A stretch of DNA of 64,000 nucleotides. It comes from Takakia lepidozioides. Taxonomy: Eukaryota; Plantae; Bryophyta. A program made the position numbers and the translations under genes. This document shows, one piece after another, positions 8,496 to 37,898 of this stretch; within the stretch, counting starts at the first letter, position 1, and every line of letters begins with the position of its first letter. Under the pieces are notes generated by a model. The model did not search any database. It worked only from the letters and a program-made list of their open reading frames with translations, and was not told the DNA's origin. The stretch is from NCBI GenBank assembly GCA_030704615.1, contig CM060732.1:38068001-38132000 (forward strand), given 5' to 3'.

Positions 8496-8533
8496 GCAAA
8501 CAGCAAGCTGATCTGTTAGAACTGACCATTGTA

Positions 8534-15291: not shown

Positions 15292-16235
15292 ATGGTACGC
15301 TCACAGGCCCCACAAACCTCTCGGTCTGGGCACGCCCATGCAGCGCATGGAGCAAAGAGGGACTCTAGTAGCCGAGTGCCAAAGCCCTCGGGAATTTCTC
15401 GGGAAATTGGTGACAGCGTAGGGTGGTTGGAGGGGGGATCTGCGCACAGGGTGCCGCGTTCTGACCAGCCAAGGAGTGGTGAATCTCGACTTGCACCGGT
15501 TTCCCCACTCGCTCAGCTCCTCCAACAATCTCAGGTGAGCCCCATGGAACCTCTGGTGACCTGTGCAATAATCACGACAGCACGGTGATATGATGTATAA
15601 AGCACATTGTGATATTTCGAACTGAAGATTTTCACCTTGGAAACTTTCGTGTGAGATTTTGTGCACACTCCATTTTGAAAAGTGGAAGGATGCAGTCTTC
15701 AAAATCACAATCCAAACTGATCACAGATCTGGCAAGAGTTACTGAATAGTACTGGTTGTGCTGCCTGATGTAGGTCAGAACCGGGGAGAATAACAGAATG
15801 CTTGTCACCATCACAGTTTTAGGCAGCCCTGGCCCTCTCAAAGTGGTTGTCGATTCCAGTGCCTCAGTCCGAGACGTCATACGACTCGCCCTCGTGGCCT
15901 ATGATCGTGAAAGAAGGCTCCCATCCCTGCCCATTGTTAGCACACGGTTTGATCTATATTGTGGGTATGATGCATCCGAGCCCTTGGACGGGGCCCTGCG
16001 AATTGGACGCTTGGGGGTCAGACATTTCCTTATGTGCAAGAAAGTGGAAGAAGAAGCGCAGGAGTTCAAGCAATCGGAACAGTCCAATGTAGCGTCATGG
16101 CTGACCAAATTTTTGGTGTCGGCAGTGTCCAGCGTTTTTGTGGACATTGTGGAATGTAAGCGTCCAAATTGGGTTTTTGGAGGATTCTCCGTTGAGAGTT
16201 TGGAGCAGAACGCAGCCGTCATCAGATCAATCTAG
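15292..16235 (+). CDS. Plant DUF7054 / At4g22758-like protein; exons 15292-15534 and 15774-16235
   Basis: Family-like block VTITVLGSPGPLKVVV...ALVAYDRERRLP...FDLYC...IGRLGVRHFLMCKK. A phase-0 intron CAG|GTGAGC ... TGTAG|GTC joins the exons in frame. Confidence 0.8.
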
Positions 16236-17719
16236 TTTTATCTCTCCCTTTTACAAGTGCGAACATACCAGGTGACAAAATTCCAATTGGCTTGCAGAGA
16301 TTCTTGCAACACTGCCGTAGCATAGCTGAAGCTGTCAATGAGTAACATGGACGAGTGTGGAGCAGAATACGAGCAAAAGGCTTTCTGAAGTTGCCAGCTC
16401 TTTCTCCCACTACTAATCATCCCCTTCACCAAATCCCCTGCACCAATTATGTTTGCAGAGGTTGTATTATACAATGTGAAATGGGACCTGGCTAAATTTA
16501 GGAGTTGATGCCCTAGCGAATGCATTCCAGATCCTCCTAGTCATTACCCTACTGCAATGATTCTTGCGAGGAAGAAAGGTTCATGCCGGGGCAATCCCAC
16601 CTGGAGAAGAACAAGTTACTCCTATGGATTGACCTTGTACAATAATCTAGTGAATTACCATGAACTTTCTCCAGAAGCAGTACGATATGAGCACAGTAGT
16701 TGCCCAAATTGTGCAGGCAGTCTACATAGCACACAGAATGCTACCAGTCTTGTACTGATCTTTACTGTAGGTACCCTCAAGATGAGTGCGAGCCAATTCC
16801 ACAGGGTAAGACTGGTGAATTGTAGTGTAGTTCAGATTTAAGCCTATGCATCCTTTCGTGAGGAGAGGGTTCCAGTGAAGTTGGCGCTTTGTCGACCCAA
16901 ATACTGTATATTCCAATGTGCAGAGCAGTGACTGTATGATACTTTTTCGAATGTGTTTTGGTAGGTGTCTGTATATCCTTTTCTCCCTTCTGAACTTTTT
17001 CTAAGGTGAGCTGATCAAAGTGTAAATCATAAAGATAGGGCAGACACATGACGATGTGTACAGACAGCTTTCACCTTTGCACAAGCTGAAGTTTTGTAAG
17101 TGGGGATTGTGAATCAGGAAATTTGTCACTCAGGACAATGTGCAGACCTATGTTATATTATGCTGTTCCGAGTATGCCAGTTCTAACTTCCGCAACAAGA
17201 CTTGGACTTCATTAAGTGCTGACCACTTTGCTACTTACAAACCTGGCAACTTGTTATACTTTGTTTATGTGGTATCTAATGAGTCAACCATAGCACCTTG
17301 TTTGTCCCCAAAAACGTTGACAGCTAGAAAATATAAATGATAGAATGCCCTGGCTAGTCTGCCATGACCCTTCATGAGCAGATCAATTTGATCTAAGCCA
17401 TGACAAACCTTCCAACCCCGTGTGTATCTTCGTTGGCAAGATGTGCTTGCAACCATACTGTGAGTACCACTTCATGTTCAATTGGCAACTGTAGTTGGCA
17501 TTTGAGCAGCTTGCCAAATTTACCTGGCACAGCTTACGCTACTCAATCTGTCTCTAAACTGTCTATTCCAGATACCCAATCTTTCACTTATGGAACTGCA
17601 CGTCAGGGGCACATGGAAATTAGCCACTCAACAACAAAATTGTACTTCCATCTGGAGATATTCTTGATTCTCCGTGACACGAGACCTAATTACTAGTCTG
17701 CAGCTCTATCTCCCTCTCT

Positions 17720-18197
17720 TATGAGAGCACCGGGAGGTTCAGGGTGGGTTCCCACAGTCTGGATAGAGTGTACTCAAAGACGTTGTTTGCCGTAGCCTTG
17801 TGGCCATTGACCCGCGCCCAGTTTGTGCAGAACATGAAGGGACAGAAACTACCTTTATCAGGAGCTGACGTCGGTCTGCGGATAGAGACTGGTAGAAGGC
17901 ACAACTTGCAATCTGTGCACCGTCTGTGCCCTGCTTGCCATGGGAATAACAGGAACATCGGAAATGATCAAGAATAAAATTTCTTCTTTCACTGCCCTTT
18001 CTACTATGAGGGCCGTGGGATACCGGGATAGCTAATCTCTCATGGAGGTTTTCCAGCTGACCTGCCTCTATCGTTGACTCTTTAGACAATCCCATGAGCA
18101 ATAGTTGCTCTTGGGCTGGTGCCTATCTCTTTCTTGTTCTGCCTTCCTCTTGTCCCATAAGCTCTTTGAGCTTCCCGCGGATGTTATAAGATACCAT
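17720..18197 (-). mobile_element. Possible decayed LINE APE endonuclease 5' fragment
   Basis: MVSYNIRG resembles the APE start motif S(W/Y)N(V/I)RG. The rest is degenerate. Confidence 0.3.
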
Positions 18198-18334
18198 CTC
18201 ATTTCAGGTCATGGATGGGAAATTTAGTTTGTGTGAGCCTCTCTTTCCGGACTAGATCTCTAGATATAAAATTCCAAAATTTTGGGACTCAACTTGTTTA
18301 AGATTAGAAAGCAGACGGCAAATCTCACTTGTTT

Positions 18335-19057
18335 CTAGCTGAAAGGGTTCGTTCTCCGATAGAAGGTGTCCCTTATTACAGGCTTGCGAGCATGTGCTGG
18401 CTTGGCAAGGTTGGCATGTGATGTAGTACTTCCATACACACTCGGTGCCGTCTGGTATGCCCCACTTTCCTTTACTAAAGTAGGATTATTGTTGCAGTAG
18501 GCAATGCTATGTTTGCAGTAGTAAGTTTCTTTCGGACATTTTGAACAATGTGGAGTTACAGCGTTTCTTCCTATGTCATACTGAAATTGGGGTCCATCAA
18601 ATCGAGTCGGTATGCGTTGACCAATCTCAGCATATTTTTCCTTCATCTTCTTAATCTCATGGCCTGCCATTGCAAGAGCTGTCTTCAAATGTTTTCCTTC
18701 TTCCTTGATTTGGCTGCGGTATTGCTTAGTGCGGCACACGTTGCTACACTCATCGCGCTTTGAAAAATCTGAACTAAGAAGGCCTTTATTCTCTGTTTGA
18801 GACTTGGCATACGTGCTCTTGTCAATGTATCCATCGCCGTCTGAGACCCATGGATGCTCTTTTTGAAAGAATACATCGTTGGTCTGGAAACCTTGTCTGG
18901 CAGTGTGAGATTGCATCTGCTTCCCCTTGAAGGCACTTCGACTCTTGGGCAATCTATTGGTATATGGATTCGGGGAATCTGCTGTGCCCACATTGATGTA
19001 GCTTGTGGTGGCGAAAACTCCTTGAAGGGCACGCTCCGTCAGCTGATTGTTATTCAT
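18335..19057 (-). CDS. Probable cilia/flagella-associated protein with a CFAP96/UPF0602-like N-terminus; single coding exon
   Basis: Intact ~240-aa ORF from MNNNQ. GVF..TSYINVG..PY...KGKQM...FF.......DGDGYID resembles the CFAP96 N-terminus. SSDFSKRDE.SN..RT.QYR is recalled from algal and protist flagellar proteins. Confidence 0.6.
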   Translation of the reverse strand: MNNNQLTERALQGVFATTSYINVGTADSPNPYTNRLPKSRSAFKGKQMQSHTARQGFQTNDVFFQKEHPWVSDGDGYIDKSTYAKSQTENKGLLSSDFSKRDECSNVCRTKQYRSQIKEEGKHLKTALAMAGHEIKKMKEKYAEIGQRIPTRFDGPQFQYDIGRNAVTPHCSKCPKETYYCKHSIAYCNNNPTLVKESGAYQTAPSVYGSTTSHANLAKPAHARKPVIRDTFYRRTNPFS

Positions 19058-20388
19058 CTTAAATAACCTTGCTCCTGGAACTAATTGCCCAGGTGGGACC
19101 TCAACTATATTCTTCGAGCCATAAATGATCAAAACTGAAGTTTATGAGCTCTTAGCTCAATCTCTCAAGAGTTTCTTCCTTTCATTTCTCTAGAAACTGC
19201 GCCCACTCCCCACCCCAATCCCCCCCCCCCCCCCCTCCCCACCACCACCACCACCACCGTCTCCAAACACCTCGTGGAGTCGTCCACTCAAACCCAAGAT
19301 TTCTGAGCCAGATGCGAACCGAATATGATAGAACAAATAACAGGAGAGGTCGTATGTAATCAGATTGTGAACCTTGTCAATTCGTTGCTCTCTGTCAGGA
19401 CACAGTGTCATCGACACGAAAGGTTAACAGATGAGGTGGGAGACCCAACACCCTCCTAGCGTTTTGATGGAATGTGTAATTTACTTCCTGCAATATAGCA
19501 AGATTCACCTGAAGAGTTCTGTTTCAATGAGAAAACTAACTATGCAAAGTTCCCTTGAATTTCTAAGGTCAAAAGCATTAGTAGTGCCTGCTCAAGACAT
19601 GCAGACTGAGAGCCCTTCAAGCTTGAATTGCTTAAACAAGTTTGGCCTTGCCAGACGTCCCAGATGCTCTAAAGTCGGGCGAATACGCACTCCTATCACG
19701 TCTGTCCTGAAATGTTGGGGCAACCGCAGAATCCCGACGTTACATGCCCAATCTTTCAAAGCCAAAGCACTGGTTCCACACCTCATCCACTTGGCAGACA
19801 GGAGAGAAGTTGATTCACCTAAACTTTGTATGTTGGGGAGCTGGAAATCACATACCCATTTTGGAGGAACGAGGAATCGTCCAACCGTTTCGGGAGACCG
19901 CTGGACGTTTCTCTTCAACAGTAAAACGTCAGATGACCATACAGAGGAGACGAGGCGACACGCTGGAACCGGCGTGGCCGACGACAACTGTTGTGCTTGA
20001 GTTGAATCTCTTCGTGGTGACCCAAACCAATTTTTTCCTCACAGGGAAAGAAAGAAGAGACTTCAAATCGTCATAACGTCCACAGAGGGCCAGGAGAGTC
20101 TTCATCTGAATGATCTATACGTGTATTGGGCACCGGAACCTGGAGATATTGGAATGAGGTACGTGACCAACAGTAAGGTGATGGCCGTTTGAGTGAGATC
20201 ACATACCTTGGCGTTGAACTGCAACCCCACAAACTGCTCCGGTAGTTGTTATAATCTAGCGGAGACTACGCCCTGAAGGGTAAGTGATACAACTTAATTA
20301 CTTGCTCTAGCAATCTACCAATTTGAGTATAGTATGACATTGTTCTCTGACTCTTATTATTAGGACTTCTTCAGACTTTTGCAGAGTT

Positions 20389-21006
20389 ATGGCGGACTCA
20401 ACTTGGGACACAGATACCCCACTTACCCCACAACCGATAAGCCCACGATCGCTCGAAAACTCCCACACTAATACGCTGAGTCCAGAAATCCCAAGGACAG
20501 GGACAGGAGCAAGGGACCCTTTTAAAAGTGATCACGATTTTGAAGAGCGAACTATGCGCAAGCCAGCGGTCATGACCTGGATAGACCGACGATCTTTGCA
20601 CTGTGGCAAAGCGTGCGCAATTCCCCCCGACTAGCATCACCACCCAATCCTGAAGAATATAAGTCATTCGGACATGCAACCTTTCAGGCAGAGCAGGGTG
20701 GAAGAATGGCTTGTGCGTGCACATAAGAGAAACCCAAAGGAGAAATTCGGCCCCTATCTATGTAGAGCGGCTGCTCTGGCCTGTTCTGAACTCAAAAAAA
20801 GCAGGAAACAATGTTTTGGAGATGAATACAAAGACCACATTGATAAATTTGTTATGAGACTTTTCTATGGTATGAAACTAAAGCTCGAGCGCTCGGAGTC
20901 AGTGATCCTGGGAGTGGATGAGGAGACATTCATTTTACAACTTCTGATAGAAGAGTGTGAGACACAGTACAACTCTGGCGAACTTTATCCACAGCAAGGA
21001 CACTAG
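20389..21006 (+). pseudogene. Orphan ~205-codon ORF with one in-frame TAG (20632-20634)
   Basis: ORFs 20389-20634 and 20674-21006 share a frame. A canonical intron GTAAGT (20280) ... TTTTGCAG (20383) ends just before the ATG. Confidence 0.4.
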
Positions 21007-21279
21007 CACGGGCTTTCCGAGAAAATGTCGGCTCCTTAAGACTTACCAAGCTCAATAGGGGTTTCTGAGACTTTCATTGGGAGCTATGATCCGTGTAGAA
21101 ACACTAACCCTCTCAAATGTAGTACCACACACGTGATAAGAGAGAGATTTGCTTACATTAATATCCAAGAATTAACGATAGAGAGAGACAAAAGTCTCTC
21201 TTAATGTTAAGTGACATCTACTCTTGAGATTTCAAGAGCTGTAATGAATACATTTGGATGAATGTTCAATTATCATCCA

Positions 21280-21710
21280 ACCCTCCCCTTAATGAAAACA
21301 CTCAATCATCTACATCCAAATCCTAAGACCGGTCACTGATTAAAAAAAATCAAACAAGTCCAATGGAACCATAGCATAGAGAATGGTTGGGGGAATGGTG
21401 AGCAAGTCAGCCCACATATCTTCAGCTGAACAAAACTGTAAGCTCAATGTCCTTATTCTCAACTTTCTCACCAAGAAGTGATACAGTAATTCAATATGTT
21501 TGGCTCTGTCGTGAAATTGAGGATTCCATGTCAAGGCAATACAGGACTGTTTATCACTTGTAACAATAAAGACGTGTGGATTTAGGTTGTGGAAATCATA
21601 AATTTTTGAAGTAGTTTGCGGATCCAAATTCTCTCTTTAGCTGCTCATGCTGCAGCTACATACTGTGATTTCGTGGATTAAAGAGCAATCGTAGCTTGTT
21701 TCCTACATAG
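21280..21710 (-). mobile_element. Ty1/copia RNase H remnant plus PPT
   Basis: KQATIAL.STKSQYVAA and DKQSCIAL..NPQFHDRAKHIELLYHF...DMWADLLT. PPT TTAAGGGGAGGG on the minus strand near 21280. Confidence 0.8.
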
Positions 21711-21837
21711 CCTGAAGTAGACTTACTAGACTCAGGATCACCCACCCAATCACTATCTGTCCAGCCTTCAAATTGAAAGTGGGACTCTTGCTTGGATCGA
21801 GGAGCAATATATGTAATCCCCAATTTACTTGTAGATT

Positions 21838-22370
21838 TCTTATTTATTTTTTGGATAAAGGGGGAAATATTCTTTATTTCCCCGATATTTTATTTATGAG
21901 GTGAAAAATAAAACCCCATAGGGCCATATAGCAAACACACCACCTGGTGAGGGACCAACCCAGAGACTAAAATAGAGAGAGAACCATCCTGCTGGATGAA
22001 TGAAGGAGCTACCACCATAGACAGACCCCTATGGAAAAGCTAAGAAAGAAGCTAGAGCCTAGGGGCTGTGAGCTCCAGCGTCAGAGACCAGAACACGATT
22101 TGCAATGCGAAGGCGCCAGATCGAGCAACTGAGAGACAGGGCCCTAGCACACAATTCGGCCAGGGCAACCATCCGGGCCTAGAGGAGAAGAGAGAGCCAA
22201 GCCTGGACCGGTGGCGTAAAGGGATAGATAGAGTGTAAATGGACGATTTGAGACTCGGAAATGCAGGAGTTTGAGAGCCAGGCCCGGGGAGATGCTGGTG
22301 GAGTCTCCCTTTACGACGCCCCTGGAGGAAGATCGCAGCAGCAGGGCCATCACCCAGAGCCGAGTCCCAA
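21838..22370 (-). mobile_element. Possible LINE 3' end remnant
   Basis: The reverse complement resembles the 3' UTR and A-rich tail of the LINE at 24545-24670. Confidence 0.35.
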
Positions 22371-23144
22371 TCCTTAGATTTTAGGTATCAAAAAATGCGG
22401 TTAACAACATTCCCGGCAATGCAATATACTTGGATTGCCCAGATAATTTATATATTGTATCTGAGCTAGCTAGTGCTCAAACGATCCATAGAGATCTAAC
22501 AAGAGTCAACACTACCATAGTACATGGGCAATTTTGACACAAATTTTAATATTTCAAAGATTGTTGAAAATTTGGAAATTGAATTTGAGAAAGTAAATAA
22601 CTTGTGAATGGTAATAAAGCATCTTTGGGAATATTTCATATATCGAAATGGAATTCTCAAAATAAAATAAATATTCGATCTTGGTACTACATTAGTAGAT
22701 AGGCTAGTCAAACGACTATCAAAGAAGATCTAAAATATATTATATTTAAACGAAATTTTGCATCAATATAGTACACCATAAACACACATATGTTGAACAA
22801 TACTATTCCTAGGCATAAAAAGCCCATGAAAGAATATTCATGGTGAAAAAAAAACTCAAATAAGTCATGGAGACAGTTGAGTCAACATTTTAAAGTGTCA
22901 TTTAAGCATGTACATAACCATTTATGTTGTTAATGCTTGGATTCCAACAAACTTGTCTCATAAACTTTATAGAGTTATGTCATGCGGCATCAACTTAAGG
23001 ATGAGAATCTAAGGTGTCATCCTAACAGCACCACTATTGGTGCATTTGAACTTCAAATGAGTAGTTTCTCCAACAATAACTTTCTTTTGATAATCAGATT
23101 TCATGCGGCATCAACTTAAGCATCAACTTAAGGATGAGAATCTA

Positions 23145-24670
23145 CGATAAGGGTCTGCGGCTGGAGCTCCCCCACGAAAGACATGAACCCCGGGCCAGAT
23201 CCATCCATCCCTACTTGTACCGGGCTGGCACAGAGTTCCTTCCTATGGGTGCTGGGAAGACCCTTGGCAGAACTGCAATTCGACCCCAAGGAGTGGACTT
23301 GGACTTTCAAAAATTCGCCGGTCCCCTTTTTCGCTTACACCACTAGGAAGGCCTACAAGGCCTTGGCAGATCCTAAGCCTCTCCATGTCAAATGGAACAC
23401 CAAATGGCAATCCTTTGGCTTTCAAAATGAAAACTGGAAGGCAATTTGGAAATCCATATGGATAAAAACCAGGCCTGCAAAAATCTCTGCATTCCTATGG
23501 CAGATCGCGAATAGGGTACTTAAGGTAGGAGAATGGCTCCAATTCCACGATGCACTACTATGTTGTTGCTGTACCTCGGGATTGATAGAAACATTAGAGC
23601 ACTGCCTTCTAGGATGCCATGCTCCAATTAAAGTCTGGAACGCAGTTAAAGGGCTCTACAAAGATTGGAATCCGTAGCCCTGTTACCCATACACCTCTGC
23701 TTAATTATGATATGAACTCCAAAGGACAGGCTCATGAATGTCCGGTCTTCGAATGCTTGCGAGCCTCCACGCTATGGCACATATGGAAAGCGCGTTGTGC
23801 TTGGTCTTTCTCAGGGTCCACATGCTCTCTGTCAGTCTTGTTAGCTAGAATCTTCTGGGATCTGCAAATTGAGGCAAGAAAGGCTTGGATAAAGTTATGT
23901 GCAGACATTCAAAGAGCACCTCAATGTGCAGCAGCACTACATGCAGCCTTCAAGAACACCTGGGCCACCAACGGACATATCTGCAGTTCTCCCGATCAGT
24001 CAAGCTGCAACTGGACAACGATCCCCCCAGTCAGCTGGAGGAATCTCGGGTCGGCACTCCATGGCGGCATCCCCGGAATTCGATAGGGATATAAACTGGA
24101 GGCATATCAAGACAGCAGCCAGGCTGAGATTCCGATAGTCATCGTTCTTGCCACCTTCTCGCTCTCATAAATTTATATTCAGTTGATTTTGCATGCACAA
24201 TCACTCAACTACAAAGCCTTTGGCAGGCGAGGCTTGTCCGCCGCGACCCCCTAACAGCATAGCATAGGATTCTAGCCCTAGTTTTCCTTGCTGTATCTCT
24301 CCGAAACAGGGAAGAAAGCATCCGTGCAGGATGGAGGCCATAGGGCCGTTCTTTAGCACTTAGCTGCTTTTACACGATGCATCCACCCCATATGGATGAT
24401 CCATCTATATGATCCATCCACCCCATAGGTTTAAGGTTCCAATCAACTCTTCAAGAGAGGGTAGATCCATCTATCACTGATTACAGTGTGTGTCCTTCTC
24501 AAGCGAGGGTAGTTCAATCTATCACTGACTACAGTGTGTGTGCCTACATGGCGAGTCATAGGGGTTTTAATTTTTTTCCCCGACAAATAAACTTAATAAA
24601 TACCCAGGGCTACTACCCCTTTCCCTTAAAAATAATTTTTAAAATAAAATAAAAAATAAAAAATAAAAAA
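23145..24670 (+). mobile_element. 5'-truncated L1-like LINE (zf-RVT region, 3' UTR, A-rich tail)
   Basis: WKSIW...PAKISAFLWQ...C..C....ETLEHCLLGC..W and LWHIWKARC; (A)nT tail; AATCTA on both sides as a candidate TSD. Confidence 0.85.
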
Positions 24671-25041
24671 TCTAAGGTGTCATCCTAACAGCACCACTAT
24701 TGGTGCATTTGAACTTCAAATGAGTAGTTTCTCCAACAATAACTTTCTTTTGATAATCAGATTGTCTCTGATTTGATAGCAAGCTGGTCACAACAACGAC
24801 TTCCACTTTGATATGAACAAAGTCTCAATTCGACCAAGGGAGCACATGCTGGAGGCCACGACTGTATACATCTTCTTTAATCAAAAATTACTATTATATG
24901 AATATGCATTAATAGCATTGTTGGACTCTTGATTGTTTTCATTGAAGGAGGGTGTTAGAAACCAATTCTATATTCAACATATCATATGGTGAATCTTGAA
25001 AGGACACAACTCAGGACAAGAGTTATGATTTGTGCGACTTA

Positions 25042-25397
25042 GAGCGTCCTTCCATGTGGGGGGAGCCCGCCCGTTTGCCTACCGCATGGAGAAAATAGTC
25101 GGGCTCTCGAGCGCGTTTCCACTTCTATGTAGAGCTCGGCGACCGGGTGCTTCCTTTGGACTTTAGCATGAGGTGGTAGGGACACTGCAGGTAAGCGTGA
25201 CTTTTAAGTGATGTGGCACGCAAGTACATGCTACAATCAATTCGCGATACACGGCGGACGAGCTCTCTTCCCATTTTATGGGGCTGCGCTACCGACACCG
25301 GAACTCGTCCACCGGTCCCGCCGCCCCATGCATGGAAGTGAGAAGTGTACCCCGCCATTTTTGTCCAATAGTGGGCCGGGTACATGGAAGGCTGCTC
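25042..25397. mobile_element. Tourist/PIF-Harbinger-like MITE
   Basis: TIRs GAGCGTCCTTCCATGT / ACATGGAAGGCTGCTC (14/16 match); flanks TTA / TTG. Confidence 0.65.
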
Positions 25398-26718
25398 TTG
25401 ACCTATTGGTTGTGTCAGTCATGACTCTTCACATGTCCTAAAGTGAACAAAGGTTAATTATAAGTTACTCTCTCTTTCTCAAATTTCTACTAGCTAGAAC
25501 ACAGAGCTCTCCAAATCTTTATCTTTGCTTTTATAGCTTCCAAACATAATGTACCGAAAAATACTCTAACTTGCCTACATGGCAATTAATAAGCTCGGTC
25601 AAAACTTGGAGAAAATTGATAATACAAAGAAAAAATTATTTACTTGACCAGTGTGAGTATGTATGCTTATATTCTGATAATCTTGAGGAGTTTGATACGT
25701 TCAAATCTCTCAATTGTAGTGACAGTCCTATTCATCTTATGAATCACCATCTTTTAGGAGTCAAAACTTAAAAATTATGATGGGTCAAACTAGAGATTAC
25801 ACTAGAGATGGGTTACACCTTTTTTGTTAGATCAAGTAGAGGATGGGATCAGGACTAATTCTGTAGTTCAAGAAATTAGGCTTTATTAAAATATAATGGA
25901 ATAATAGAAGGTGGGTGGCCTTGCAAGTGCTTGTAGGACTTGTGGGGTCAAATCTATAAAGGTGCATGTTGGGTATCATGCATTATAGCCAAAAGGCTGA
26001 GAGCACATTGGATTTAAATCCAATGTTGTACGGTCATGACTCATGCCTAAGCTTTTCAGATTATAGCTACAAATTAACCCTTCAAGGACCAAGGGTCGCA
26101 AAAGTATTCTAGGTTTGCACAAAGGAGAAAGGGTGCGCCCAGTTGTGCACAACTGTTGGTCGGATCTATACATGTACCCCTTTACAAAAGGACACAAAGA
26201 GAAGTCAATAGTCAATAGTCCTACCACCATCCAACGCAACCTTTGAACATCTTTTGAATATAATCTCGAAATAAGAGCTTAAATGGGTTCCTTACCTTTT
26301 AGCCTTAAATGCAAATTCGCAAACTAATTCACGAACTCCACAAGCAAGTGAGAAGTCCAAGGGCACTGACTCATTATGGGGGTGGCTACATCCATTATAA
26401 TGAGAGACTAGAGATCATATGTCCTAGAAGGAAAACTGAAGAAATAATTAGTGTTACATATGTAAATTGAAGTATTTGTTTCAACATCCAGTTTGATGTG
26501 ACCTTGCTTTTGGGGACAGTGCCCGTTCACTTTAAGGGTTACTAGGTTTAACAATGCAGGTGGCACTTACAGCACCGAGTTGCAGTTCAATCATCTTCAA
26601 TCTTTCTCAATGGACCTAGCCGATAGCTAGAACCTACAACTATTTTCTCTAGGATGACGACACATATCATATTATTGCCAACACTGTCAGAAATATTCTC
26701 CATGGATGCATATATATA

Positions 26719-28356
26719 GTGAGTCTCAAAGTCCTGCTATCCAGGACTAACCAAATGCAATCCACAAATATGTCAACTGAGAATGCGATGCCAGAAGTAG
26801 AATTATTTCATGTACACACAGACACAAGAGAGCAATTTGTGAAAAGAAACTCAAGACTTCCCAGAACATCAAGGTCTTCACGCCGAGGATCTGCACATTG
26901 GTCAGAATATAAAATTCCTGGGAACCAACGTGTTCGTATAAATCGCCCAGGATTGGCACCCGCAACAAACTCTAGACTTACATATACTTCTCGGAGTGTG
27001 GCAGGGTCAAGGAGTAACTCATTCCGTGACATCGAGTCCAAGAAAAGCTCACAATGGTTGCCTCAGAAATTGTTATATTGCCTTCTTTGTGGGAGTCCAG
27101 GACACCTGGGGCAGGAATGCGACCGTAGTAATGGGTATAAATATTCCAGATCCAACAACAGAAATAGTCAAAGTGTTCGAATGGATGTCGTTGACACAAA
27201 TGGAATCATGGCCCGAAGTGATCATTCAGGCCAGGGACTTGATGAAGACTATAAACGATGGACCTTAAATGAGGACTTTATGATAGCAGCTACTTCGATG
27301 ATGGATCTAAAAGAGCTTGCCTCAATATGTGGTGAAGGTAATGGTGATCAAACCAACATCCTAGTCAGGACGTACTCAGACACTTGTAGAAAAACTAAGC
27401 CTTGTCAACTCGTAAGTAGAAGGAAATCTTTATCTACTCTTAGTCCAAATAGGTTTCGCAGTGTTAGACAGCTCGATCCGATCATACAGGGCGAAATCAA
27501 CGATTCGGAGTTGAGCCAACTACCGTACGGCTATAATTGCGGCAGCCCAACACGTCGTAGTGGGGATTGTCATACTAATCAAGCACATTGTGACTCCCAA
27601 GTGTTAAGACCTAGATCCACTCCAAGAGCATCCAAACAATGCGCACAAGTGCGTTTTCGCATCAGGACACCAAGGGAGGGATATCCTGCATATGAGGATG
27701 TTAACTTAAAAGGTGAACCCGGATTGGCTGTGGGGTCAAATAAGTTATCAACATCAGCTACTTCAGTTACGGATTCCGATGAGTCCGTAGCCATCATATG
27801 GGGAAAAGTAAACGATGTGGAAATAGCAATGTTACTGGACACAGGATCCTCCATCTCTGCAATTACAAAAAGCTTTGCACACAAGTTGAGGCTGAAGACA
27901 TGGTATACCAAAGATACTTTGGTAGTCACTCTAGCTAATACATATGTTGAGAAGTACCCAGAGCGCACATGCATGGTTCATCTGCAAATTGGGGACCATG
28001 AAACTTATGAGGAACTAAATGTTCTCCCTGGTCAAATATATAATGTTACTCTCGGAGAAAATTGGCTTAAGCGTCATAAGGCCATTTGTGACTATGGGTT
28101 GGACCTAATGCGATTGCCTGGCTCTCGTCCAATTAAGATGGGAACCCCTAGTGCACCCCTTTTACCTGTATGCATATGTTCATGTTCTTTGCGGGCTGAG
28201 AGATCTGCAATGGCAAAGAAGTCGGGTGGGAGAAAGACTACAAAACATGCGGCGCAGTGCACTGAGCTGCAGCCTTACACAAATCGTATCCCTCCCAGTC
28301 TCCGCACATCGCTTTGTCTTGGAGATTGGCTTCCACCCAACTTAAGAGCATACTGA
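26719..28356 (+). CDS. CCHC zinc-knuckle plus retroviral-type aspartyl protease (retropepsin) protein; first ATG at 26755
   Basis: Uninterrupted 545-codon ORF with CLLCGSPGHLGQEC, GKVNDVEIAMLLDTGSSISAI and YNVTLGENWLKRH. TATATATA lies just upstream at about 26711-26718. Confidence 0.75.
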   Translation: MSLKVLLSRTNQMQSTNMSTENAMPEVELFHVHTDTREQFVKRNSRLPRTSRSSRRGSAHWSEYKIPGNQRVRINRPGLAPATNSRLTYTSRSVAGSRSNSFRDIESKKSSQWLPQKLLYCLLCGSPGHLGQECDRSNGYKYSRSNNRNSQSVRMDVVDTNGIMARSDHSGQGLDEDYKRWTLNEDFMIAATSMMDLKELASICGEGNGDQTNILVRTYSDTCRKTKPCQLVSRRKSLSTLSPNRFRSVRQLDPIIQGEINDSELSQLPYGYNCGSPTRRSGDCHTNQAHCDSQVLRPRSTPRASKQCAQVRFRIRTPREGYPAYEDVNLKGEPGLAVGSNKLSTSATSVTDSDESVAIIWGKVNDVEIAMLLDTGSSISAITKSFAHKLRLKTWYTKDTLVVTLANTYVEKYPERTCMVHLQIGDHETYEELNVLPGQIYNVTLGENWLKRHKAICDYGLDLMRLPGSRPIKMGTPSAPLLPVCICSCSLRAERSAMAKKSGGRKTTKHAAQCTELQPYTNRIPPSLRTSLCLGDWLPPNLRAY

Positions 28357-28951
28357 ACAGACTTGTACACAATGAGTTGCATCACCACAGCTATGACGTC
28401 TTTGAGCTGTATGTCTTTTGTGATCATAACTCAGCAGTCTTCCTTCAAATTCGAAGTCATCTACCTACTTGAATCAATGATAGAGATCCAAACAAAGCTG
28501 AGATGTGGATGCTTAGAACTTAATTCGCATATGTACATGAGTAATTTTTTAGGACAATTGTGCAGTGGTTTTGTCCAGTCATATTTTTTACACATATGGA
28601 AAATAATTGTACCACAAACACAATGAGGCTTCCAAGTCCAACCCGCAAAATTCGTATGTAATTAGGGTGCCACTAATTCATGTTTTTTGCAAAGAATCAT
28701 GCATTCATTTGATGAAAATTATATGTCAGATTTCATGTGCACAACATGCAAATTGAATGTATAATCAGAATAAGAAAGAGAAAATCACAAATCTTTACAT
28801 ATTGTAAAGCAATTAATTAACCGTGCAACTGCATTATCATTACGAGTTGACAAACTAGCAAGGTACCACAATAATAAGATGCAGATTTTTATCCAATACA
28901 TGCATGTCTACAAGAATATGGGAAACTAATTAGGTTCCATTCAAGTCCTAA

Positions 28952-29410
28952 GAGCATCTCCAACGGTGGCCTCTAAATCTGCCCCGCTATTGAAGCTATG
29001 GCGGCCCACTTGGTGTGTCTCTGAAAATGAACCGTAGCTATGGCCCACCCATTCACATTAAGTTCTCCCCTCCATAACAAGCACAAGCCACGTGTTGGAC
29101 GTGGGTTGTGTGCACATACTGCGTGTTGCGCGCTGCCATGAGTGACACAATGACCTTGAGAATTTGGTCGAGCCCATGCCGCGTGTTGCCATCGCGAGCT
29201 CCTAGACAGTCAACATTCATTGACTTCCGTGTGCCGAGCATGTGCAGCCCTGCATCCTCCAAATTGGTGGTAATGTTTGGGATTTTACGGGGGGCTGGTG
29301 GCTTAAGTGCCGTGCATGGTGACCGCTGGGGTGCAACTTCGAGCAACTTCAGCGACGGCATCTGCAGCTTGTCGTTGCAGCGCGGCATGCCGTGACCGCT
29401 GGAGATGCTC
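28952..29410. mobile_element. Tourist (PIF/Harbinger) MITE
   Basis: TIRs GAGCATCTCCAACGG / CCGCTGGAGATGCTC, with a TAA TSD on both sides. Confidence 0.9.
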
Positions 29411-32400
29411 TAAGTTACCTGTATTGGGTCATTCATAGAGAAATTGCAGTCTACCCTCTATATATGTTATATCTCGGGAAGTAGAAAAAATGTAACACAT
29501 ATAGGTATTTAACATCATAATGTACTGTATATATAGAATAGCTACACAAAGCTTGAAAACCAAAACCTTTAACCACTTCTGGAAAAAAAGAAATTTGAGT
29601 TTGTATATAAAAAACTTAAAAGGCTCGTCAACAACAAAGTAAAAATCCCAATGTACATTTCATTAGCTGATTATTTTAATAATCTCTATACATTAGTGAA
29701 TTAAAGAGTTTGATGATCCCCATGTTAAGTAAGGGTTATAAATACCAAACACGTTTAATGATATATATCATGATCTTAGACTAAGTATCTTGTCATACAT
29801 CTATACATATATGCATTTGAAAGAAATTAATATTTATTATGAATTGAGTAAGAAAACATCGATCATAACACTTAATATGTACAACCAAATGGTAATTCAA
29901 CACTTTTATCACCAGACGAACACCTTCGCCCAATTCTCTTTTTCCGTACCATGCACTGCATAAGTGCAGGTTGGATCAAATGTTGGGTTTGTTTTACACC
30001 AGATCAGGATCTCTGACAACACCTCCATCCTCATTCTGCAGAGTTTTGAGGATGCCTATGTGGAGTTAAAGCATCCATGTGTCGCCTTAAAACCTACGCC
30101 CGGAAGGAAGTAAGGCCGACAGTCCATCGTCCATGCGTTGATGATGAGTTTCGGGACCTGAAACCCTTCCGTTGGCAGCGCAAATGCCTTGGCGATGTAT
30201 TCATCTATCAGCTCTATTGGCTGACCCTTCCAAAATACAGACTTTAACTCATCATTGCAGGAAGTAATCATCCTCACGATGTCTACAAGTTCCACTTTCT
30301 TCCAATCTACCTCGAGGACGAAAGCTCGCATCTGTCAAGCTCAAAAGTTTCCGTCTCATTTCTAGGACTTTGTCGTATCCGTGCATCCATGATTCTAACC
30401 AGAAACAATCTTGGCAATTTCTATCCCAACTCCTTACCTGACATTTCTATTCATTTGAAGATGGTTCAGGTTCCAAATTTACTTTTTTTAGGGGGCCCTG
30501 CTTGCATAGCCCACCAAAGTAAAAGCCCATTTTTTCTTTTCTTATAATGTCAGTTTAGATAATGCATTGGGTGCCAACTATGTGTGATTTTGGGCTTGAG
30601 TCCTGCTACCTTGAACTTGGGCGGTATTATAATATCCCATTTCATTAGGCTTTGCCCTTGAGCCTTGTGCTTGACACCTGTGTCATGTCACTTAAAATGA
30701 AGAGGGTAGTTTTTCATCTCACTGTAATTAAGGGCCTGATTAGTGAGCTGTCAATACTCTAGGTGGTTTTTTCTAAAAAATTCAAAAATGCTTGCTTTGT
30801 AAAATCTTCTAGAGTAAAACGTTGATAGCAATAAAGAGGATTAATAGATATGGATTAAACAAATGGAGGGTAGAAAACATATTTGTTTTTTTCTAACAAT
30901 GATGTTGTTTCATGTTGCCACACATTGTGGAAGTGGAATAGAACATCTTGAGAGCATCATAATCCTTGAAGAACATGTCAAGATTATAAATTTTACTAAG
31001 TATTAGTTTCTATTTCTAGATAGAGTTCTATAGTATCTGCATGCAGTTTCGTCCCACTATTAGGGTACTGCCTAACCCAATCCACATAACACATAAACAC
31101 CATTTTTGACTCACATCCTATGGACTGACCCTACCCACTCATATTCATGCATTGTCTGTAACCTCATGATTGCCTATCTCAACAAAGAAGCATAAAGACA
31201 GAGAAACTACACACCCAAATGTATATCCAATAATAAACAAAATGCAACATCTTGTCCACAATCTCTCTAACCACTTCTTGACCTCCAAAGTAATCCCATA
31301 TGTCCAATTAAATCTGACAAACGTTGCGATTACACTCAATACATAGAGAACCAACGAAAACATCTCTTTTGGTCTCAACTCTATCCATGTTTTGCCCCTT
31401 ACATACAACCAACCCCCGACCCACTCGAGACACATGGTAGGGGCGCCCCCACCCTTCATGACCCCCTCTGCTACACGCCTGCCGTAGGCACATGCGCGCG
31501 CATTGAAGATGCTATTATCTTTCAAAGAGAAGCGAAATTTGAAAAGTCATGATGGATATCAGTAAAACTCATCAAATACTCAACATGGGCTTCCCAAGTT
31601 ATTTTAATTGGACGATTTTTCATTTCGGTTATATCGATTCCAAAGGGAAATGACATTGAAAACATGCACGCAATTAGTTTTAACTTTTGGGTTTGCGTAT
31701 ATGTTTGTCATTTCGGTTTGTGCATTTCTCGGACAAGTCATTCAGATTGTTGGTGTGGGCACTGGGATCATTGTTCAAGCAGCATTATGCCAAGAGATTA
31801 AAATGACCGCTGAATTGGTGGACAAGGTGTCGAAAGAGGTGAATATTACAAGGGAAAAGCATCTCTCCCCTTATGTTGTCCTCAATGCGAAGGGGATAGA
31901 TGAGACGGTGGAGAAACATCAAGATCAAGGCAAAGATGTGGATGAAGGAGTTGAGCCAATAGACAGTGGAGTAATGATGGAGTTACGTGCAGGACATACA
32001 GCAACAGTCCAAGTCTAAGGAGTATTCTACGGCCCAACAATGCATACCCAAAACCAGCAGCAATCGCTGCGTATGAGCCGCAACACAACCTTCCGTATCA
32101 TGAGACATAACCAAGCAGTATGACATACATACACAAACCTTACGCACACTATGAAAACAGAAGGGTTTTCTTTCATAAACATAGGTACATGCCAAGGTCG
32201 TCCCATAAGGCCATACCACCCCACATTTGCTACTCCTCTGTGTGTATGCAGCTCCACACCATGCTAGTGCCCAAGGGGTGCCCAATTCAACTATGCTTTG
32301 ACACCATACTAATTATAGGTATTTTGGCCCCCACAGTGTTATAACTCCCATCATGCGCCCCACGCGCATTTGTACCATCTACTATGCAGAATCTACACAT

Positions 32401-33695
32401 TGTCACGAACCGATATCCAAAACTTAAATCTCTTAGGAACGAAATGAGAAATACGCCCATTTGACCCAAACCCTTTGATGACGAGGTTGACAAGTTGCCC
32501 GCATCCTCGTCATCACAGCTCGTACATGGTGACATTCAAACCTATAGCCTCAATCCTTCCACAATATCCTCAACTTACCAATCAGAGCTGCCACAAGCAC
32601 ATGCCTAAAAAACATCCATCCTGTGGCCATCCAGTCTCTCACAGCTATTATTATTAGCAAAAGCAAATTCGAGCACAACCACTAGTCTTTGAGCAATATG
32701 ACTGTATCTATCGGACCCACCCTCAAAAAAGGCAATAGTCGAAAGGCAAAGTGGCTCCCAATTACGCCGGTCTGGCTGACCCTTTTCTCTCTATTGTTTT
32801 GAAATGTAGTGTTTCTTATGGATATTGGTCATGATTGTGTGCGAATTTGATCTAGTATATGATAATCATTTGGGGCTGATGCTTGTACATCTTTGAAGCT
32901 AATCTACAAGTAAACGAGTTCGAAAACTATCTCAAGTGATTATATTGCTCAGCTTTAGGGGCTTTCATCTAAAGTGGTTAGGACTATTTCTTCATAGTTG
33001 TGGCATATTCACGAACGCCTCTCCAATGACAAACAATATGCATGTCATTTATTTGTTCATCACACTGGTGCCTCAATAATTTGGTTTTAATTCAACCATC
33101 TCTTAACACGATGGATCTTGCATTGGATTTTTTGTGCTTTTCAGCCTCTGGTTTCTTTGTCTCAAATTGAATTATGCACTTCGATTCATCTTCACATGAT
33201 AGTTGTGGTGGGCTAGAATATTAACCGTTAATCACTGTTGTTGACTTTTTTGAAAAATGATACCTCTAACATGAAAAATACCTATAAAATCCAGAAATAC
33301 ACGTCCAAAAATACAAATGACCGTATGATGTTGCACACTATGCATATGCTCACAAATTTGCAAAACCATTAGGCCTATCTAAAAATCCCACCGTTGGAAG
33401 TGAGGTTTTGTTTTACCAACTTCACCGTAGGATAAATTTAGGTTTATATAAGGTTTGGTGATTCCTCAATGCCATGGTGGTCCCACCCACTTTTCTCACT
33501 TGTATGGAGGGGAAGAGCTCCATATATATGGTGCATTTATAGCCTGAAAACCTGACCTCTATCTCCCTTCGCTTCACATTAGTTTTCATCTTATCCAATC
33601 AACTGTGCACTAAATGGTCCCATATAATGTCAGGGGCCTGTGATCCAATGTGCTAAAAATTATGTGAAACCATGATCCTGAATATATGAAAAATC

Positions 33696-34024
33696 CAGTG
33701 TTAGGCGGTTATTTGATTTCTTTTATAACCTCTGGTTCCGGTTTTTACAAAATCCTACGATCAAAGAACCTCCGGTTTCGGTTTTTTCATATCTTTTTTA
33801 TGGCCTCAAAGAACCTCAAAGAACCGGCGGTTTTCATCAAATAACCGGCGGGTCTTTGATGGATCTTTGACGGTTTTCAGGCTGGTTATTTCAAAACTAC
33901 ATAATCGGCGGATATGAACCTTTGCCGGTTCTTTGGTTTTTTGAGAACCGCGGTTATATATCCATATAACCTTCTTGATAACCTCCGGGGGTTGGTCGAT
34001 GAATCAAAGAACCTCCCAACACTG
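33696..34024. mobile_element. hAT-type MITE
   Basis: TIRs CAGTGTTAGGCGGTT / AACCTCCCAACACTG; 8-bp flanks GAAAAATC / GAAAAAAC; internal AACC(G/T) subrepeats. Confidence 0.8.
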
Positions 34025-37000
34025 GAAAAAACATCAATGGATTGAGCAACTGACGCAGCCCATTTTGGGCTTCATGGGCATTTAGAGATCAAAACCTTTG
34101 ACAAAATGCATGTGTTCTACACATACCATACTTGCCTATGTAGTTTGTCAAGCGTCTGCCGGAATAGTTATTTTTTCTTGAAAATGAGGTCCGGCAGTCT
34201 TTTTCGAAATTTTTGTATTTCCAGCAGTTTCAGTATATATACAATTCTAGCGACGACCGCAGGTCGGAAGCTAGTTTAGCGTAGAGCAGGAATAGGGTGC
34301 CATAGTGCCACGTTTTTGTTGCCAGGTCATCGTCGCCACGTTTTGTCGTCAAATTCTTTGGAATCTGCCCGAACTACCCGCCCGGAAAACGCCAATAGAA
34401 TTTCGCGCCAAGTGTTTCGAAACTGCCCAAACTGCCCCGTTTCTTGATTTCTTGAACCGCAGGAGGGGTTTCACAGGCTGATCGCGATTCGCAATGGAGA
34501 CGTTCAGAGATTATGAGTACGCAGCAGGACAACTGCAATCGCAAGGTGTGGCTTTTCTTAATGTATGATGTGAAGAAGTTTTGCCATCCTGCAAATAGGG
34601 GCTCTTAGTACCCTGATTTGGTATTCTTCCTGATGTTTACAAGGTTCGTGGGAGAATCAGCTTGGTCTTAGCAAGCCATTTTTCAATCTTTGCCTGCTCA
34701 GCTGCACCGTGGTGGTTCTCACATACAATCGGATTACCTGACTATAGACACAAGCAGCACACAAAGGTCCTTTTGGGTTGATGGTCGGCCAAATCCTCCA
34801 TGGGTCATGACACAAGGTCAAGGACAATGTGGTGATGGCACCTTCTTCTGCGACCTATTTCAGCCTGTTTTGCCCTCTCATCAGACTCGGCCCTGACAAG
34901 CTTTGGAATGAACACTTGTAGTGTGAATATATGGTTATTTTTATTTTTCTTTGCAGCTGTTTGGTGGGGCTAAGTACTTCAGATTTTACAACATTTAAGT
35001 AGTTGGATGAATGACCGTGATGGATGAATTATGGCTCACTGGATGAAAGCATCCATCTGCCAAACATCCCTGTGCCATAGATCGGCGAGATTTATAAGTT
35101 GTGGCGTTCTTCATGCAAGCACGCAAGCACGGGCATGGCGAGCTGCTGACACTTTGTATTCTGGAACAGACATCAGCCTGCAGTGCCTTAGTTCTTGGCT
35201 GCGATTTACCTTCATGTTGCTTAGTCAGTATCAGCTATGGCGGCTGGGTTAGTTTTCCAGTCAGGGCTAGTTCATGTTGTCGACTATAGGAGCTGCAGGT
35301 GTAGTAATTGCACAGGCAAGTGGGGTTTGGGTTTTACGGCAGTTTTTGTGAGAAGGCTGCTAGCTTTTTGGAGATAGTAGTGAGAGAAGCGGAGGTGGTG
35401 ATGGTGACATGAAGGAGAGACTTGGGCTTTAAGCTCCAGACTCGGTATTTGTAGAGAAGAAGGTTTATGCTGATGAAGAAGTAAAAATCGACTGTTTGGG
35501 TCACTGCTTGGTTTTTGTGTCTGGAATCACACTTGCATGATGCATTAGTTCATGTATTGTTGCCATGAGGGAAGTCTGATTGCAGCTATGGTCAGTTTGA
35601 GCATGTAAAGGGTGTGGGTGCAATAGCTGGGAAATCAGGGCATGTATGTAGTGCATCACTCAAACCACCTAGTGGGGAAACTTCACATTGCATAGATGGA
35701 ATATTAGAGTGTATCTATAAAATGGCGGCATTGTTATTTGTTTCCAGAAGATCAGTCGAACCCGCTGCTCGTGCATAACGGACGAGTGTATTTGGATCTG
35801 ACCCTTGGACTCGAGAGGTAAAAGATGAGAGAGAGTGACAGAAAATGAGCTGATGTCGGGTAGGCTCGGGTAGTTCGATTAGGTTGTTTGATGGGATACA
35901 AGAGGGTGACGGCTCTTCACGGGCAAGGCCCACCTTTCAAGGGGAAAATCTGTGAAGGCTATGCTGGGTGTTTTGCAGCATCCGTGATCACATGCAAGAC
36001 AGTTGATTATCTGTGACGGATGTGTGTCCTACCTATGTCTTCTCTTCCGCTGTGGCATGGGTGGGACAGAATGATACTCTGGTGACTTGAAGTGAATGTC
36101 GTGGGGAAATGCTTTGCCCCTTTCTTTCACACCACACACTTTTCCGACCCCAGTCAATGGTGGGACAATGGAGACAAAAAGGTGAATGCCAGTTGGACTA
36201 CAGAGAGAAGCAGATGCAATTCAAAATTGGGTTGGTCAGTGTCAGCTGCTAGCAGGTCTCCATGGGTCATGAAACAAGGTCAAGGACAATGTGGTGAGGG
36301 TACCTTCTTCTTCGACCTATTTCAGCCTGTTTTGCTCTCTCATCAGATTCGACCCTGAGATATGGGTCCATATTCATCCAAGAGGACCGGATTTCAAGCT
36401 CCAGATCACCTATGATTCCCTGTGGAAGGATAGCTACAAGAAACATGCATAGGTAGATGGTCAATTGGAAGCCGCAGCAGCACCGGTACAATTGACAAAT
36501 TCAAGCACTACTAATGAAAGCACCTTCTTCAAAACATTTCACCCTGTTTTTCCCTCTTATCACAATCGGCCCTAAATTTTCATGTTGAATTCTGCAAGTT
36601 AGCTGGTTGAGTGAACCGTTTGATAGTTAGGAGTGACTTTGATATGATACTGCCAATGTGACAACAGGGAAGTATCCATAAACAAGTAATAGAGACGAGG
36701 AGAGGTTGTGGAATGAATACTTTTTTGACCCCAGTCAATGGTGGGACAATGGAGGCAAAAGGTGAATGCCTGTTGGATTACAGAGAGTAGCAGATGCAAT
36801 TGAGGATAGGAACTAGAGTGATAAGTTGACTTGGGTATTTCCTAGAACAAATCTAGGCTGTCATTGTCAGCTGATAGCAACGAGGCAAGGATTTATGTAT
36901 GATTTGTGCAGAGGCATGGATAGCTAAGGAGTAGGGATAGTGTGTGGGTGGACAAGTTCATCCAAGAGGGCCGACTTCAAGCTCCAGATGACCTATGATT

Positions 37001-37098
37001 CCATGTGGATCAATAGCTACAATAAACCTACATGGGTAGATGGTCAACTAAAGGCAGCAGCTGCAGCGGCATAGTTGATAGAATCAGACACCTCAACC

Positions 37099-37898
37099 AT
37101 GACCACAGCTTCTGAAAGAGGATCAATAGAGGGAGTCCACAATGCCTCTTCTAGCACTTCTGGGCGTGTTAAGATACTTTGTGCGGCAAGCAGCCTGACA
37201 GAGGCTCTACAGACTTCAAACCAACGAGGCATTTCAGCAGATTCAGATACGTATGTCTATCTCTTGCTTAAGTGCATGAAGATGGAAGGTCTAGAAGCTG
37301 GAAAGCAGGTGCACACTCACATTATCCAAAGTGGATTCACACCAAATGTTTTTCTACTCAACACCCTTGTCCAGCCTGCAAATCTTAGTTCAATCTCTGC
37401 CTGCTCAGCTGCACCCTGGTGGTTCTTACATACCAATCCGACATTACCTGACTATAGACACAAGTAGCACACACAAGAGGTCATTTTGGGTTGATGGTCG
37501 GCCAAATCCTCCATGGGTCATGACACAAGGTCAAGGACAATGTGGTGAGGCCACCTTCTTCGACCTATTTCAGCCTATTTTGCCCTCTCATCAGACTCGG
37601 CCCCGAGATGCATATTGAAGTTAGCTCGTTGGGCACCATGATTTGGTATTCTTCATGATGTTTACAAGGTTTTTGGGAGAGTAAGCTTGGTCTTAGCAGG
37701 CCGTGCCCTCCAAGGTCACGTTCATTCTACTCACAAGGCATGTGCCAGCATAGGTGCCCTGGAAAAGGGAAAACAGGTCCAAGCTGACATTTTGAAAACT
37801 GGAATTGCACCGAATGTCATTCTAGAGACTGCCCTTGCTGCCATGTAGGCCAAGTGCGGGAGCATGAAGGAGGCCCGTCGAGTTTTCGACAATATGGC
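37099..37898 (+). pseudogene. PLS-class PPR pseudogene
   Basis: TYVYLLLKC....LEAGKQVHTHIIQSGFTPNVFLLNTLV and KACASIGALEKGKQV...ALAAM*AKCGSMKEARRVFDNM. Split by a ~350-bp insert and truncated by an LTR. Confidence 0.85.

Follow-up and report, generated by a model that had tools for sequence, protein, structure and literature searches.

Open Reading Frame and Putative Protein

The window (the whole stretch of DNA analyzed, 64 kb in length) contains an open reading frame of 545 codons followed by a TGA stop codon (26719..28356, + strand), which was aligned with its homologues over the full length. The frame was open throughout, as the preliminary description of this DNA had claimed, and according to the ORF list of the window, no other ORF within 14–42 kb exceeded 165 aa. 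The first in-frame ATG (codon 13, position 26755) coincided in the alignment with the first methionine of the homologues; the frame counted from this ATG comprises 533 codons, and the product is therefore probably a protein of 533 aa. The GTG start given for the ORF is an artefact of the bacterial translation table. An A/T run, ATATATATA (26710..26718, + strand), was read directly 37 nt before the first ATG and is the candidate for a previously mentioned "TATA-like" element, a detail that has no weight for the domestication reading. A scan for bacterial-type promoters and terminators was irrelevant to a plant nuclear gene and was set aside. Expression was hinted at weakly, namely, by one homologous contig of mRNA size (1842 nt) ending in nine A residues.

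The C-terminal part of the putative protein contains a retropepsin domain (aa 355–478; 27781..28152, + strand), which was delimited using Pfam, AlphaFold2, Foldseek, and hhalign. The Pfam model gag-asp_proteas (PF13975) matched aa 362–452 with an E-value of 1.5 × 10−10 (41.9 bits, cut-off 28.2), and the Asp_protease_2 (PF13650; 38.2 bits, cut-off 24.3) and RVP_2 (PF08284; 29.5 bits, cut-off 20.3) models were also above their cut-offs, whereas the Ddi1 model (PF09668) was below its own (15.6 bits, cut-off 26) and no UBL or UBA matches were found in the ORF. Of the RVP_2 and Ddi1 profiles suggested for comparison in the preliminary description, only the former was above its cut-off. A retropepsin profile was matched by all 34 aligned members of the family. 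The two motifs noticed earlier as intact are indeed present: the D374-T-G triplet of the predicted active site (27838-27846, + strand) and the second retropepsin motif T-L-G-E-N-W-L, i.e., T-L-G (T444) plus a helix (28048-28068, + strand); D374-T-G and T444-L-G were invariant or nearly so in the family alignment. In the AlphaFold2 model built from the alignment of 34 sequences, aa 355–478 adopted a retropepsin fold with a pLDDT of about 90–97, and a Foldseek search with this model returned the Ddi1, XMRV, M-PMV, EIAV, and HIV proteases (E-values from 3 × 10−8 to 5 × 10−4), so the structure prediction proposed in the preliminary description bore out the assignment. The best structural matches were Ddi1 domains (TM-score to target 0.73–0.80, E-value = 3 × 10−8, identity 13–21%), while a sequence search of the PDB with the protease domain gave a single match, the Rickettsia ApRick protease (E-value = 0.13). 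The profile, the catalytic and second motifs, and the predicted single-lobe beta-barrel fold all point to a retropepsin.

A CCHC zinc knuckle of the C-X2-C-X4-H-X4-C type (aa 121–134; 27079..27120, + strand) lies N-terminal to the protease, its spacing being read directly from the sequence. Residues C121, C124, H129, and C134 were near-invariant in the family alignment, and the knuckle was predicted by AlphaFold2 to be folded (pLDDT 71–84). Taken alone, it was below the Pfam cut-offs (PF00098, 12.1 bits against 20.8; PF13696, 12.8 bits against 27), and only 5 of the 34 family members matched any knuckle model at an E-value ≤ 0.01. The presence of one exactly spaced knuckle, as originally reported, was thus upheld, but the count was incomplete, since the alignment revealed a second, decayed knuckle within the linker (aa 272–291; 27532..27591, + strand), in which the first cysteine is replaced by tyrosine and the histidine by arginine; this second knuckle is intact in some relatives, including P0005.

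The linker between the first knuckle and the protease comprises 219 aa, with serine (27 residues) and arginine (22) being the most common, compared with approximately 55 aa in the Ty3/gypsy element of the same window, in agreement with the earlier remark on its length and composition. According to the AlphaFold2 model, only the knuckle and the protease are folded; the rest, including the linker of approximately 220 residues, had pLDDT values below 50, which corresponds to predicted disorder. A "Myb-like" word, RWTLNED, had also been singled out in the linker; this reading is not tenable, as no Myb model was matched in Pfam at an E-value ≤ 1, only the tryptophan recurs in relatives, and the region is predicted to be disordered. 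The family alignment showed that the variable arms retain four features. Apart from the knuckle, these are an H-W-S motif (aa 60–62; 26896..26904, + strand) within an otherwise variable N-terminal region; a basic A-Q-V-R-F-R-I-R motif (aa 309–316; 27643..27666, + strand), which is found family-wide as A-Q-M/V-R-F-R approximately 45 residues before the protease and may be a processing or docking site; and a conserved C-terminal tail of the G-x-W-L-P-P-x-L-R type (28318..28353, + strand). The position of the stop codon after the tail was identical in the window copy, P0005, and the Ceratodon protein. A cysteine cluster, V-C-I-C-S-C-S (aa 484–490; 28168..28188, + strand), located right behind the protease, is shared with the clade B relatives described below.

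Extent, Phylogeny, and Conservation of the Family

The word-index protein search, which misses proteins of greatly differing length, yielded 30 proteins of 331–674 aa, in all of which the Pfam annotation was limited to the protease. Because the claim of domestication requires the absence of polyprotein relatives, a filter-free search of all 1.84 billion protein representatives was also performed; it produced 57 matches at an E-value ≤ 1 × 10−3, including 17 at an E-value ≤ 1 × 10−30. In these 17 strong relatives (143–713 aa), the protease occupied the C-terminal end and the protein stopped just after it, and no polyprotein was found among them. They were followed by two fragments (69 and 167 aa; E-values of 1 × 10−13/1 × 10−14) and then by a gap down to E-values of 4 × 10−9 and weaker; two proteins longer than 1000 aa occurred among the 57 matches, with E-values of about 4 × 10−4 to 1 × 10−3. 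The matches beyond the family were Ty3/gypsy elements and their fragments (identity 25–32%), with zf-CCHC, RVP_2, RT, Tf2-type SH3, integrase, chromodomain, and Ty3 capsid domains in Pfam. A comparison of the family profile with the protease of the Ty3/gypsy element of the window gave an hhalign probability of 91.8% at 25% identity. Taken together, the gap in the search results, the domains of the outside matches, and the hhalign match suggest that the family is a distinct low-copy offshoot with Ty3/gypsy proteases as its nearest kin.

The best relative of the window copy had an overall identity of 44%. All named members of the family belonged to mosses, and the remaining ones originated from other assemblies and peat-type metagenomes. 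One or two paralogues were present per named genome: Ceratodon purpureus contained KC19_10G023000, and Sphagnum troendelagicum, S. jensenii, and S. balticum contained two clusters of paralogues of about 615 and 455 aa, which are labeled in the database as "CCHC-type domain-containing" and "Peptidase A2 domain-containing", respectively; the database labels of family members are limited to these two and "hypothetical". The assignment of the window to a seed-free plant in the preliminary description agreed with its own gene content, since an NCED gene of the window was placed inside a bryophyte clade (SH-aLRT 93), though adjacent to no named species, and a flagellar CFAP96-like ORF, which implies flagellated cells, was present. 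The literature searches retrieved no report of a conserved bryophyte gene combining a knuckle and a protease; this is a previously undescribed small and old bryophyte family.

Phylogenetic analysis of the protease sequences revealed two clades. Clade A (SH-aLRT 99) included P0005, the Sphagnum 455-aa protein, and the Ceratodon protein, whereas clade B (SH-aLRT 91) included P0001–P0004 and the Sphagnum 615-aa protein. The window copy was located at the base of clades A and B, where, with a distant outgroup, its placement was without resolution, and its terminal branch was 0.22 compared with a median of 0.085. It combined a clade-B-like N-terminus and cysteine cluster with a clade-A-like tail and may be a single-exon orthologue predating the split of the A and B paralogues. 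Judging from the tree with this distant outgroup, the A/B duplication probably occurred before the divergence of Sphagnum and Bryopsida.

Nei–Gojobori estimates for three close pairs of family members gave dN/dS values of 0.06–0.17 in the protease and 0.34–0.72 elsewhere. The protease is thus under purifying selection in the family, and its values are well below the ratio near 1 that the preliminary description had named as evidence against a domesticated gene. In the comparison of the window copy with all other members, synonymous sites were saturated and dN of the protease was 0.13–0.19; as pairwise dS was saturated against every relative, dN/dS is not directly obtainable for the window branch. 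The protease of the window copy was 71–80% identical to those of distant members, i.e., the domain is nearly frozen between variable arms. Of the 39 protease columns that were near-invariant (conserved in the remaining members at a level of 95% or more), 36 were retained in the window copy, the three changes being G366D, K447E, and L464M; the same number of changes was found in P0001 and four were found in P0002. Saturated dS, the low dN, and the 36 retained columns suggest, indirectly, that purifying selection has also acted on the window lineage.

Genomic Context of the Window Copy and Its Homologues

No capsid, RT, RNase H, or integrase domain was detected in the ORF using Pfam, and no capsid-like fold was present in the N-terminal part of the AlphaFold2 model. 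Neither LTR-like nor terminal repeats were found around the ORF in the window, no direct repeat linked the 10.7 kb upstream (16000–26718) with the 11.6 kb downstream (28357–40000), and the 64 kb contained no second copy of the ORF. The Pfam and repeat searches of the window therefore agree with the reported absence of a capsid, RT, and LTRs near the ORF, and the dispersed LTR-flanked copies that had been named as an argument against domestication were not observed in the window. The window is rich in transposable elements: besides a Ty3/gypsy element, it contains a Helitron and a fragment of a LINE. The earlier statement that most of their ORFs are broken was exaggerated, as two intact ones are present, namely, a Ty3/gypsy gag-PR-RT ORF of 926 aa and a Helitron ORF of 533 aa.

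The named members from Sphagnum and Ceratodon are annotated as single-exon genes located amid ordinary host genes. One Sphagnum locus has a CLC channel gene on one side and a SAC9 phosphatase gene on the other, and these flanks recur on two homeologous chromosomes and in a second assembly; the other locus adjoins CHX and RibD genes, and the Ceratodon gene adjoins a protein kinase gene. No RT or integrase neighbors were found at any of the homologous loci examined. An unrelated gene was found upstream of the ORF on the same strand (20389..21006, + strand), and this neighbor was common to the window, loci L002 and L010 (clade B), and locus L003 (clade A). Since L010 and L003 are from one sample and both possess the neighbor, the two-gene block appears to have been duplicated as a unit. 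The neighbor contains an intron in the L003 copy and none in the L002 copy, which is the behavior of an ordinary gene. In addition, a downstream gene is common to L002 and L004. Thus, the synteny check suggested in the preliminary description revealed shared neighbors: the upstream gene in the window and two other genomes (L002, L010, and L003), the downstream gene at L002 and L004, and both flanks of the Sphagnum homeologues. The upstream neighbor was also considered as a split-off capsid, for which no support was found: it had no Pfam match and no Foldseek match below an E-value of 1, the latter with a poor AlphaFold2 model (mean pLDDT 46.6) that leaves such an origin conceivable. No synteny of the window with the kinase, CLC, SAC9, or CHX neighbors of Ceratodon and Sphagnum was found, and a kinase fragment at 39316–40068, considered as the counterpart of the Ceratodon kinase neighbor, was not the same gene.

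The distance between the upstream neighbor and the ORF was 1.4–1.5 kb at L002, L010, and L003 but 5.7 kb in the window, where a LINE-like insert of 1.7 kb, bracketed by perfect repeats of 95 nt, was located between the two genes. Moreover, in the window copy of the neighbor, a TAG codon (20632–20634) replaces a conserved tryptophan and forms a premature stop. These observations bear on the possibility that the family is real but that its copy in the window has recently been relaxed or is dying, i.e., that it is a young pseudogene still without a stop codon. Recent loss of constraint in the window lineage is conceivable given the nonsense codon of the neighbor and a closest relative of only 44% identity, and the LINE-like insert, the three changes at near-invariant protease positions, the decayed second knuckle, and the terminal branch above the median are in line with it. 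However, the full frame is uninterrupted, and none of the catalytic or structural motifs has been lost; three changes at 39 columns are on par with those in P0001 and P0002, both of which are under purifying selection, and a deep lineage from which only one member has been sampled should have a long branch. We therefore consider a young pseudogene quite unlikely.

Origin, Possible Role, and Comparison with Known Systems

Based on the above, the ORF is very probably a host gene and not a mobile element, derived from the knuckle-to-protease stretch of a Ty3/gypsy element and maintained by selection after its fixation at a chromosomal position. The domesticated Gag-protease proposed in the preliminary description is thus supported by the absence of LTRs, the tiny family devoid of polyproteins, synteny, and the low dN/dS of the protease; of the features expected of a domesticated gene, both syntenic orthologues and purifying selection were found, the latter indirectly for the window lineage. 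The retrotransposon origin is suggested by distant similarity (25–32%) and the order of domains.

As for the donor, an endogenous pararetrovirus (Caulimoviridae) or a cellular Ddi1-type protease in place of a Ty3/gypsy element would be consistent with the top structural matches, which were Ddi1 domains and several caulimovirid proteins, and with a weak Peptidase_A3 match in one distant relative. However, fold matches at 13–21% identity cannot distinguish retropepsins from each other, and in the viral structure library, the matches were generic for retropepsins, with caulimovirids and retroviruses not separable. The Ddi1 profile score below the cut-off and the lack of UBL/UBA domains argue against a Ddi1-type donor; the nearest outsiders by sequence carry RT, Tf2-type SH3, chromodomain integrase, and Ty3 capsid domains, and one or two CCHC knuckles N-terminal to the protease correspond to the Gag-NC arrangement. 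Such a donor is therefore very unlikely. That the ORF is what remains of the gag-protease region of an LTR retrotransposon, dead or non-autonomous, and is still open by chance is extremely improbable: although the window is rich in transposable elements, the knuckle precedes the protease as in Gag-Pol, and gag-only TR-GAG elements are known in plants (PMC4350172), the ORF has neither LTRs or flanking repeats nor a capsid domain, its 17 strong relatives in 1.84 billion representatives include no polyprotein, the stop position, the synteny across genomes, and the protease dN/dS speak for conservation, and chance cannot hold a frame of 545 codons open while synonymous sites become saturated.

If the gene is indeed a domesticated one, a segment of a Ty3/gypsy-type LTR retrotransposon would have lost the capsid, RT, RNase H, integrase, and LTRs, after which it would have been fixed and come under selection. 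By analogy with other retropepsins, the C-terminal domain of approximately 125 residues would homodimerize, with the two D-T-G loops forming one active site. The disordered Ser/Arg-rich N-terminal part and the intact knuckle may anchor the enzyme on partner proteins or single-stranded nucleic acid, and the basic motif upstream of the protease may serve for autoprocessing or docking. As the likeliest roles, we propose that it interferes with the maturation of retrotransposon Gag-Pol or acts in regulated proteolysis on ribonucleoprotein particles. A bolder suggestion is that the protease is ancient (present in the ancestor of Sphagnum and Bryopsida, and perhaps older), that it may have been kept with a lineage-specific partner gene as a two-gene module, given the occurrence of the upstream gene next to both paralogues in one genome and next to the window copy, and that, guided by nucleic acid, it controls retrotransposon particles or ribonucleoprotein granules. 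This suggestion is speculative and rather unlikely to be correct; if true, it would mean that a plant host has turned the retroelement's own protease against the retroelement. The contrast between the near-frozen protease and the fast-evolving disordered arms is unusually sharp, and since members of the family occur in Ceratodon and Sphagnum, the genomes of which have been sequenced, the function could be tested directly.

Among known proteins, Ddi1, a cellular dimeric retropepsin, was the closest to the moss protease in predicted fold (TM-score to target 0.73–0.80), but differs in its UBL/UBA domains, which are absent here, in its Pfam model, which was below the cut-off, and in sequence (13–21% identity). 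The Gag-Pol of Ty3/gypsy elements (Metaviridae) similarly contains one or more knuckles followed by a retropepsin, and these elements are indicated both by the top-scoring Pfam family (gag-asp_proteas) and by the closest sequences outside the moss family. Unlike Gag-Pol, to which its identity is 25–32%, the moss protein has a linker of approximately 220 aa instead of about 55 aa, ends after the protease, and is encoded without LTRs; its family is low-copy, syntenic, and selectively constrained.

Well-documented cases of co-opted gag and protease genes of retroelements are known from mammals (SASPase, PEG10, and RTL1). PEG10, like RTL1, is a domesticated Ty3/gypsy gag-pro gene that keeps a CCHC knuckle and an active D-S/T-G protease, and SASPase (ASPRV1) is a dimeric, autoprocessing aspartic protease of the skin. 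The moss gene resembles PEG10 in the combination of a knuckle and a D-T-G protease from Ty3/gypsy gag-pro; however, PEG10 has a capsid and a −1 gag/pro frameshift, whereas the moss gene has a single continuous frame and no capsid according to Pfam and structure prediction (for PEG10 and RTL1, see PMC3406341). With SASPase, whose family is discussed in PMC3670739, it has in common that it is a stand-alone, intronless host gene with a retropepsin from a Ty3/gypsy-type element and without RT or integrase, while the CCHC knuckle and the long Ser/Arg-rich disordered arms are both lacking in SASPase. Neither PEG10 nor SASPase nor any other animal protein was among the 57 matches at an E-value ≤ 1 × 10−3, and the mammalian genes were also absent from the results of the PDB sequence search; hence, no sequence relationship with SASPase was detectable. 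The independence from the mammalian genes proposed in the preliminary description follows from two results: the only outside relatives were of the Ty3/gypsy type (25–32% identity) and the named members were from mosses only, which argues for a domestication separate from that in mammals. Thus, the moss gene would represent a plant counterpart of SASPase and PEG10, in which the same evolutionary solution was reached a second time and independently.

Duplication of the two-gene block and the syntenic upstream gene

Both paralogues of the knuckle-protease family were found in a single sample (SRR36092047), namely, the clade A protein P0005 on contig L003 and the clade B protein P0001 on contig L010. 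Each of these contigs also carried a separate copy of the upstream gene ahead of the paralogue, indicating that duplication had involved the two-gene block as a whole. The syntenic upstream gene, located at 20389–21006 (+) in the window, is lineage-restricted, with only two matches obtained in the word search. The window copy contained a TAG codon at 20632–20634, at the position of a Trp conserved in the relatives; translation from an in-gene ATG at 20674 could nevertheless produce the conserved C-terminal helical domain. The spacer separating this gene from the knuckle-protease gene contained LINE-like ORFs, among which a zf-RVT domain was identified (23183–24086). These ORFs were enclosed by a perfect direct repeat pair of 95 nt (23006–23100 and 24669–24763), and the region 23006–24763 looks like an insertion that lengthened the spacer.

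Possible transcript of a relative

The contig of the homologous protein P0014 (L013, 1–1842) was mRNA-sized, with a leader of 217 nt, a trailer of 245 nt and nine A at the end, and may be a transcript. If so, it would give a weak hint of the expression of a family member in this relative, which was very AT-rich (GC = 29%).

Mobile elements and repeats in the window

The Ty3/gypsy element at 6295–11751 (−) contained an intact 926-aa gag-knuckle-protease-RT ORF (8534–11314). Its repeat blocks (6347–7245 and 10899–11751), spaced 4552 nt apart, overlapped the 5′ part of this ORF; the arrangement therefore points to copies in tandem or nested within one another and not to a simple pair of LTRs. Helitron remains (42888–48666, +), lying in a stretch with a strong AT skew, comprised DUF6570 and Helitron_like_N domains in ORFs of 533 and 227 aa and a separate ORF encoding a Pif1-type helicase. 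An array with a 10-nt period (38269–38703), a satellite with spacing of 161/363/527 nt (40465–42042) and an array in which a unit of roughly 90 nt occurs five times (42277–42730) were also identified.

Other genes and ORFs

A 250-aa ORF at 39316–40068 (+) had a weak protein-kinase match under the Pfam cut-off; it was rejected as the counterpart of the kinase gene adjoining the Ceratodon purpureus family member (KC19_10G023000), as the two were not homologous. The ORF at 18335–19132 (−) had a CFAP96-like (cilia/flagella-associated) match barely over the Pfam cut-off, which fits an organism producing flagellated sperm. An intronless gene at 58308–60326 (+) encoded a 9-cis-epoxycarotenoid dioxygenase (NCED) of 672 aa, which fell within a bryophyte clade of the tree and whose best named match was from Sphagnum (identity = 61% across 98% of the query).
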